The translations under genes and the position numbers were made by a program. From positions 1 to 8,900 of the forward strand of contig NW_021828202.1 in assembly GCF_006345805.1 (NCBI RefSeq): DNA of 8,900 nt, given 5' to 3'. Source of the DNA: Octopus sinensis. Its lineage: Eukaryota. Below the pieces are notes generated by a model. That model was not told where the DNA came from. It worked only from the letters and a program-made list of their open reading frames with translations, and did not search any database. Of the stretch, positions 4,598 through 5,210 are shown one piece after another (the stretch's first letter is position 1; each line of letters begins with the position of its first letter).

Positions 4598-4662
4598 TTC
4601 TATTACGAACAGTTGCGTATGAAATTACCCATCACTACCATGTGTATCTCTTTTATACCAAA

Positions 4663-4717
4663 CTAGCACTATGGCCCGGCAACACCGAGTCATGGTGCTA
4701 GTGCATGCATATACAGC
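4663..4717 (-). mobile_element. Isolated Helitron 3' terminus (hairpin plus CTAG|T), second copy
   Basis: 4661-4717 is a 57-nt direct repeat of 4846-4902. On the minus strand it ends hairpin-...GTGCTAG|T. Confidence 0.8.
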
Positions 4718-4824
4718 AAGAAAGACCGTATCGTTGTGACATATGTGAGAGATCGTTTATCACGAATAGTGTCTTAAAAAGACACAAGCGAATCCATACT
4801 GGAGGAAAACCTTGTGAGACATAA
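4705..4824 (+). pseudogene. Single intact C2H2 zinc finger in a 39-aa mini-ORF (missed by the ORF track), probably a fragment of a multi-finger ZNF gene
   Basis: Translation [39 protein letters not shown]: Y-x-C-x2-C-x3-F-x5-L-x2-H-x3-H plus TG(G)KP linker. Downstream TGTGAG..TTCTCTTAGAAATCT (C-E..F-S-*-K-S) looks like a decayed next finger. Confidence 0.85.
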
Positions 4825-4847
4825 GAAATTCTCTTAGAAATCTATAA

Positions 4848-5210
4848 CTAGCACTGTGACCTGGCAACGCCGGGTTATAATGCTAGTGCACGCATATACA
4901 GCTGCATGCGTGCACACATACACGCGAGTACTGTCCAAATCTCCGACCAGTCACATACAGCTAGCTGGCATTCAATTGGTGTATCAAGTTTCGGGCATTT
5001 TGATTGGGTTTTGGATAGAAAATTCACAAAAAGTCCACTTTCTATTGATTTTTAATGGCTTTGCGGGGTGACTGGGGAATGTAAAGATTGTGCACGACCA
5101 CCCTTGGACGGTTTTTGAATGACCATAGAATTGCGAGCCCTCTAACTGAAAAATTGTGGATTTGTATAAAGGACACACACACAACAGACATTCTGCCATT
5201 TATATAGAGA
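4848..5210 (-). mobile_element. Non-autonomous Helitron (~363 bp)
   Basis: The minus strand begins A|TCTCTATAT (5211|5210) and ends CTAG|T (4848|4847), with the GC-rich hairpin CCCGGCGTTGCCAGG 12 nt before the end. These are the canonical Helitron TC...hairpin-CTRR termini in an A|T target with no TSD. No RepHel coding sequence. Confidence 0.8.

Follow-up and report, generated by a model that had tools for sequence, protein, structure and literature searches.

A zinc-finger (ZNF) gene fragment of octopus lies between two same-orientation copies of one 57-nt end sequence, and this terminus-finger-terminus arrangement is real and better than chance. The analysis covered a stretch of 8,900 nucleotides from Octopus sinensis (contig NW_021828202.1, positions 1 to 8,900; hereafter the window). 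As the best explanation, we tentatively propose, with somewhat less than even confidence, that the locus is the decayed 3' part of a nonautonomous rolling-circle element, in which a doubled end signal brackets a foreign ZNF scrap as cargo. The two ends would then be rolling-circle termination signals, and the fragment would have travelled with them. Actual transposition of the whole composite might claim perhaps half of that confidence. The first-pass annotation had described a zinc finger sandwiched between two Helitron 3' termini, and the arrangement itself was confirmed: the duplicated 57-nt ends bracket a 128-bp finger fragment, a configuration that fits published cases of end bypass (PMC4778049, PMC4224331). 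Read 5' to 3' on the minus strand, the order is a tandem array, a unique segment, the proximal end, the antisense finger, the distal end, a 60-nt flank, an old SINE, and a 5'-truncated LINE. The features of the locus are as follows.

About 4465-4600, plus strand: old SINE copy bordering the flank.
4601-4660, no strand assigned: unclassified flank beyond the distal end, 60 nt, no detectable zinc-finger similarity.
4661-4717, minus strand: distal copy of the 57-nt end, made up of the 15-nt subterminal block GCTGTATATGCATGC and a palindrome.
4718-4845, plus strand: orphan poly-C2H2 zinc-finger gene fragment, 128 bp, antisense to the element ends.
4846-4902, minus strand: proximal copy of the end, same end type, palindrome at 4847-4887.
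4903-5065, minus strand: unique segment separating the array from the proximal end.
5066-5805, minus strand: tandem array, 152-bp unit, 4.8 copies, 96% matches, a (TG)n tract in each unit.
5806-5844, minus strand: unclassified sequence upstream of the array on this strand, contiguous with 6256-6440 once the SINE is removed.
5845-6255, plus strand: tRNA-like SINE (SINE proper at ~5858-6242), a later insertion that is not part of the element.

Self-comparison of the window identified the end as a direct repeat of 57 nt (4661-4717 and 4846-4902) with a spacing of 185, in which 48 of 57 positions were identical (84%); BLAST within the window gave an E-value of 9e-8. The first 15 nt of the block on the minus strand (GCTGTATATGCGTGC) occurred twice in the window at up to three mismatches, compared with 0.18 occurrences expected. 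On the same strand, CTAG was found at 4666-4663 in the distal copy and at 4851-4848 in the proximal copy, followed each time by TT, and both copies folded as hairpins. The second hairpin-CTAG copy ending at 4663, as reported by the first-pass annotation, was confirmed as this 84% identical repeat. Within the last ~60 bp, the layout is a 15-nt motif (GCTGTATATGCRTGC), then a 41-nt palindrome (4662-4702 in the distal copy), and then T. The homology between the copies stopped 2 nt past CTAG in both, with unrelated 3' flanks beyond, and such an abrupt stop has the look of an element terminus. Upstream, the proximal copy continued without a break into the unique segment and the array; the distal copy comprised the terminal 57 nt of the element and nothing further.

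The two copies differed exclusively by transitions (9/9). Among the 19 stem pairs, 11 were Watson-Crick in both copies, 4 in the distal copy only, and 4 in the proximal copy only. Because none of the 19 pairs was non-Watson-Crick in both copies, the most parsimonious common ancestor is ACTAGCACTATGACCCGGC-GTT-GCCGGGTCATAGTGCTAGT, in which GTT forms the loop of a perfect 19-bp stem. The predicted hairpin energy was -24.3 kcal/mol for this ancestor, compared with -11.9 kcal/mol for the distal copy and -7.6 kcal/mol for the proximal copy today. Each copy stands 4-5 substitutions from the inferred ancestor, and no derived change is common to both. These comparisons provide good evidence that the end block was once a functional structured signal, which would since have decayed neutrally in both copies. 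Covariation in the hairpin was considered and rejected, as no pair was altered on both sides and only one-sided decay was observed. In the ancestor, a GC-only core hairpin (CCCGGC-GTT-GCCGGG) forms the tip of the 41-nt palindrome, 8 nt upstream of CTAG. The CTAG itself sits within the outer stem (ACTAGCA...TGCTAGT), leaving zero spacer between hairpin and CTAG. For the hairpin-CTAG end that the first-pass annotation placed at 4848, the hairpin and the CTAG were therefore present but the canonical layout was not, since the CTAG is part of the stem.

A 185-bp tandem duplication was rejected because the sequences upstream of the two copies are unrelated, and a symmetric palindromic MITE was rejected because the common block reaches 15 nt beyond the palindrome on one side only. 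Around the distal copy and around the whole composite, neither a target-site duplication nor a terminal inverted repeat typical of any other transposon class was found. Rfam and tRNA scans of the window returned microsatellite artefacts only, with the microsatellite and (TA)n tracts yielding spurious matches to miRNA families.

The fragment between the ends contains one intact Krüppel-type C2H2 finger and a broken half finger. An ERPY linker (4720-4731) precedes the intact finger (4735-4797) and a TGGKP linker (4798-4812) follows it, after which a second finger begins (4813-4845). The intact finger fits C-x2-C-x12-H-x3-H with TGEKP-like linkers on both sides, and it scored 30.1 bits against Pfam zf-C2H2 (PF00096; gathering cut-off 25.2). 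Its best PDB matches were fingers of ZNF568, PRDM9, and CTCF, all of the classical poly-ZNF kind. The start of the second finger (C-E-T...KKFS*KS) carries a stop, a frameshift, and a 6-nt (two-codon) loss, and is cut off at 4845; when the frameshift was bridged, the zf-H2C2_2 match extended to profile positions 2-22. The finger is a pseudogene piece, and function is not expected of it. A segment of about 130 nt with one intact and one decayed finger had been noticed at first pass, and the first-pass coordinates of this segment and of the two end copies agreed to within a base with those recovered here.

The fragment lies between two same-orientation 3' ends, in the order proximal end, ZNF, distal end, with both ends on the minus strand. 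Its left edge is the inner edge of the distal copy and its right edge is the outer edge of the proximal copy. Since the edges coincide with the two end copies in this way, the geometry is that expected of read-through of an end, or of ZNF plus distal end as an older cargo-bearing tail. Under the cargo reading, an element copy would have lain elsewhere, inside a ZNF gene, with a 5'-truncated end from its own family 128 bp downstream. The transposase would have passed over the first end and stopped at the second; in place of this second step, an older element might already have carried the ZNF and the end as cargo. The finger fragment would then have reached the present locus as passenger DNA. 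The compound element HelibatN539 and the Tempel model represent a documented route of this kind (PMC4224331).

The exact limits of the duplication also bear on a different origin, namely repair of a double-strand break near the element end, in which 128 nt of ZNF filler was copied and re-annealing 57 nt upstream duplicated the end block, with no second element copy and no transduction. We regard this as unlikely. In its favor, the distal copy consists of exactly the terminal 57 nt, with nothing more. Against it, the limit of the duplicated block falls precisely at the palindrome base, which would be a coincidence for arbitrary repair but is expected for a structural end. Templated insertions flanked by duplications on the 57-nt scale are uncommon. 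The ZNF-distal junction does show microhomology that favors repair, as the element sequence ...CATATACAG|C resembles the linker codons cAT ACA Gga, the canonical finger-linker codons expected before GAA AGA CCG at this junction. The lack of any common derived change in the two copies is compatible with one ancient duplication, but their 16% divergence would suit two independent members of the family just as well.

The cargo reading further supposes that the finger came from elsewhere, and the surroundings of the fragment were informative on this point. Six-frame Pfam scans (2551-6452 and all other non-array segments) detected exactly one finger, and a six-frame regular-expression scan of the window likewise returned this finger and no others. 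Because the surviving finger is well preserved (30 bits), neighbors of equal age should be visible, and their absence argues against the fragment being left over from a ZNF array at this locus. When the distal copy was deleted and 4660 was joined to 4718, the frame was kept (...YTK-ERPYRC..., faintly like HTGERPY), yet the zf-H2C2_2 match gained one profile position only. The flank beyond the distal copy matched no profile by itself, and profile scoring gave no support to continuation of the ZNF through the in-frame YTK|ERPY join. The first-pass annotation had also raised ZNF homology upstream of 4661; with the distal copy removed, profile scoring did not extend the match into 4540-4660. A minus-strand stretch near 6300-6380 (KRSHKIH...CSRQC) was considered as a finger remnant and discarded, as it matched no Pfam zinc-finger family; its sole Pfam match was a sub-threshold endonuclease, and a 13-nt inverted match to the finger there is of a kind expected about once by chance (rough estimate). 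It appears more likely, on these comparisons, that the finger fragment is foreign to the locus and arrived from elsewhere.

These results weigh against the alternative already offered at first pass, in which two independent insertions struck a decayed ZNF array, here taken as native to the locus and with nothing mobilised; one insertion and a truncated copy would be a variant of it. Insertion beside 5'-truncated Helitrons is known in situ (PMC4778049), and the frame kept on removing exactly 57 nt would suit it. With one finger in the window and no match past the distal end, we consider this alternative improbable, a shade more so than break repair.

A retroposon origin was given the same low standing. 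Here the block would be the 3' stem-loop of a LINE-dependent retroposon rather than a rolling-circle signal, and the distal copy would be a severely 5'-truncated retrocopy. Extreme 5' truncation and microhomology at the 5' junction are typical of LINE-mediated insertion, which counts in its favor. The window is also full of SINE and LINE copies, and direct repeats of 13 bp and 20 bp (19/20) flank two of the insertions. Structural Helitron signals, in addition, have high false-positive rates. Against this origin, the distal copy has no flanking target-site duplication, and neither a microsatellite nor an A-rich tail follows its hairpin, whereas the LINE copy in the window ends in (TTAG)n. ZNF sequence is absent beyond the distal copy, although it would be expected there had this copy inserted into a ZNF. 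A simple template switch of the reverse transcriptase onto ZNF mRNA does not explain the finger, which runs antisense to the element.

On the 5' side of the putative rolling-circle element, the ATCTCTATATA motif was present in four identical copies (at 5211, 5367, 5519, and 5670), each occupying one fixed position within the 152-bp unit, and the corresponding A|TC sites (5211/5210, 5367/5366, 5519/5518, and 5670/5669) all fell inside the unit. The array starts on the minus strand at 5805, upstream of all four TC motifs and in a different phase (CAAAATGTCTG...). With array sequence upstream of each candidate TC, the boundary between element and host cannot be at any of them. The Helitron start that the first-pass annotation set at A|TC 5210 was accordingly not upheld, being one of four repeats internal to the array. 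No ATC was found in 5806-5850. The region formed by 5806-5844 and 6256-6440 showed no diagnostic feature and no ZNF or Rep/helicase signal; if the array-bearing element still has its 5' boundary, this region must contain it. The SINE at ~5858-6242 interrupts this side of the element, and its target duplication, ATACACTCCTTAT, is a perfect 13-bp repeat on either side of it (5845-5857 and 6243-6255); ARAGORN made no tRNA call for it. The reverse complement of GCTGTATATGCGTGC, sought as a 5' subterminal inverted repeat (11-15 bp), was absent from the window at up to three mismatches. Only a perfect local 10-nt inverted repeat was found (4886-4895 and 4906-4915), which overlaps the subterminal block. 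The 5' end of the element may have been lost or may lie outside recognisable sequence.

At the other side of the composite, the 21 nt just beyond the distal copy (4641-4661, TGTGTATCTCTTTTATACCAA) were 81% complementary to part of every array unit (e.g. 5161-5181). This is probably a low-complexity chance match; if it were real, an inverted array fragment would flank the composite.

Several further repeats were recorded in the window. Tandem arrays with a 184-bp unit, derived from the body of a tRNA-like SINE, occupy 6419-7788 as well as 1-608 and 8286-8900, and the SINE at ~5858-6242 is of a different tRNA-like type. The middle array has ~7 units and is bordered by a 20-bp direct repeat, TATATATTTTTAATTTTGTG, at 6419-6438 and 7769-7788 (19/20). 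The SINE head (AGAAACGTTAGC...) appears once per array, at the starts 6449 and 8286. These arrays look like single SINE insertions whose bodies expanded in a satellite-like manner, or multi-unit SINEs that inserted whole. The 5'-truncated LINE 3' end (4007-4463, minus strand) encodes the C-terminal tail of ORF2, with (TTAG)n at 4000-4022. A decayed, internally deleted remnant of a mariner-type transposase was found at about 2930-3320 on the minus strand (Pfam HTH_48, E 0.05; Transposase_1, E 0.0017; both below gathering scores). In addition, an impure (GT)n/(GC)n microsatellite of 416 bp occupies 917-1332, and the long (TA)n tracts at 1649-1711 and 2261-2325 form near-perfect 60-nt inverted repeats ~550 bp apart.

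Searches for further copies of the composite were carried out at several levels. One 20-kb locus of Octopus vulgaris (OX597823.1), reached through a protein search with the LINE ORF (90% amino acid identity), contained nothing from 4600-5805 of the window; only the LINE copy and a SINE were found. The LINE at 4007-4463 has 95% nucleotide identity to this O. vulgaris copy (10113-10569 of the 20-kb locus), a match that bears out the Octopus origin of the window. The NCBI protein matching the LINE ORF is annotated as 'hypothetical protein llap_6084 [Octopus vulgaris]'; the llap locus-tag prefix presumably belongs to a bird genome project, and we take it that the record may be an octopus-DNA contaminant. 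In protein searches, neither the ORF that crosses the 3' region nor the finger peptide spanning the junction gave any candidate. The ORFs of the window had no entry in the gene-position index. The array ORF, compared with 1.84 billion representatives, gave one spurious low-complexity match only. Exact-pattern scans for the end block and the array unit gave 0 hits in metagenome, viral, and prokaryote-genome collections, which are without cephalopod DNA.

The cephalopod (octopus) lineage reportedly underwent a very large C2H2 expansion, as Albertin et al. (2015) are said to have described. If the composite were multi-copy, it would be a concrete cephalopod case of rolling-circle transposons moving zinc-finger modules, and an unusual end architecture would be documented as well. 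The far-reaching version, in which array element, finger, and distal end form a multi-copy, recently mobile composite that scatters C2H2 modules and feeds the cephalopod ZNF expansion, with an end architecture intermediate between canonical Helitrons (CTAG-T) and Helentrons (subterminal block, terminal palindrome, and central repeats), seems very doubtful to us. At present there is one decayed locus with a piece of pseudogene scrap, in a configuration already known from bat and maize Helitrons and from work in cell culture, and its value is mainly that of a lead for a genome-wide count. Even if capture is true, the locus would add a case to a mechanism that is well described, namely capture between tandem 3' ends, and would not reveal a new one.

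Regarding the element class, two groups of Helitron-like elements offer comparisons. Canonical Helitrons (HLE1) are defined by a 5' TC, by a hairpin at the 3' end that precedes CTRR by ~10-12 nt, by insertion at A|T, and by a partner encoding Rep/helicase. The defining features of HLE2 elements (Helentrons) are subterminal inverted repeats of short length, a palindrome at the 3' end, and insertion at T|T (PMC11417382, PMC4067079). Like HLE1, the locus ends at its 3' side in CTAG, and T comes next in both copies; the TCTCTATATA-type motif after A also recalls the 5' ends of plant and animal Helitrons. The GC core hairpin of the ancestor, ahead of CTAG by 8 nt, is reminiscent of HLE1, but the hairpin spacing is atypical. 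Unlike HLE1, its TC motif is internal and fourfold in a tandem unit, and its hairpin runs through CTAG. Six-frame Pfam scans of the window detected no Rep/helicase remnant. A generic scan for a GC hairpin, CTRR, and T matched 7 SINE units in the window, compared with ~1.1 expected in shuffles, so that structure-only Helitron signals are weak evidence, as the authors of HELIANO likewise hold (PMC11417382).

The Helentron-type HINEs provide the second comparison. These elements (DINE-1, Cg_HINE, and the bivalve pearl family) are non-coding and carry central tandem repeats of ~150-170 bp in up to ~5 copies, with microsatellites (PMC4067079, PMC7492417), and over their last ~60 bp a palindrome comes after a subterminal motif, as described in mites, flies, and oysters (PMC7492417, PMC4067079). 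The locus resembles them in its central ~150-bp tandem repeats, ~5 copies, and microsatellite tracts, and in a 57-nt block composed of motif and palindrome. The TT that follows CTAG in both copies recalls the terminal Ts of HINEs, although two common Ts could be chance. It differs in the 19-bp stem of its palindrome, compared with 5-10 bp in HINEs, in a palindrome placed directly at the end rather than 8-35 bp away, in the 3' tetranucleotide CTAG, as in canonical Helitrons, and in that the window showed no 5' subterminal inverted repeat complementary to the 3' block. With no TC boundary, no spacer between hairpin and CTAG, and no Rep/helicase remnant, the locus can count at most as a putative canonical Helitron. 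The comparison makes it plausible that the locus is a nonautonomous element of rolling-circle (Helitron-like) type, which would resemble Helentron-type HINEs as much as canonical Helitrons.

Bypass of a Helitron end and the formation of compound elements have been captured in the models of Feschotte & Wessler (2001) and Tempel (2007), and are exemplified by HelibatN539 and by read-through in Helraiser (PMC4778049, PMC4224331). In Helraiser, the hairpin lies ~11 nt upstream of CTAG, whereas the end hairpin of the present locus includes it. The locus resembles the known bypass and compound cases in that two same-orientation 3' ends enclose foreign gene sequence, the downstream end is a 5'-truncated copy of the same family, and the putatively captured piece is a short gene fragment.
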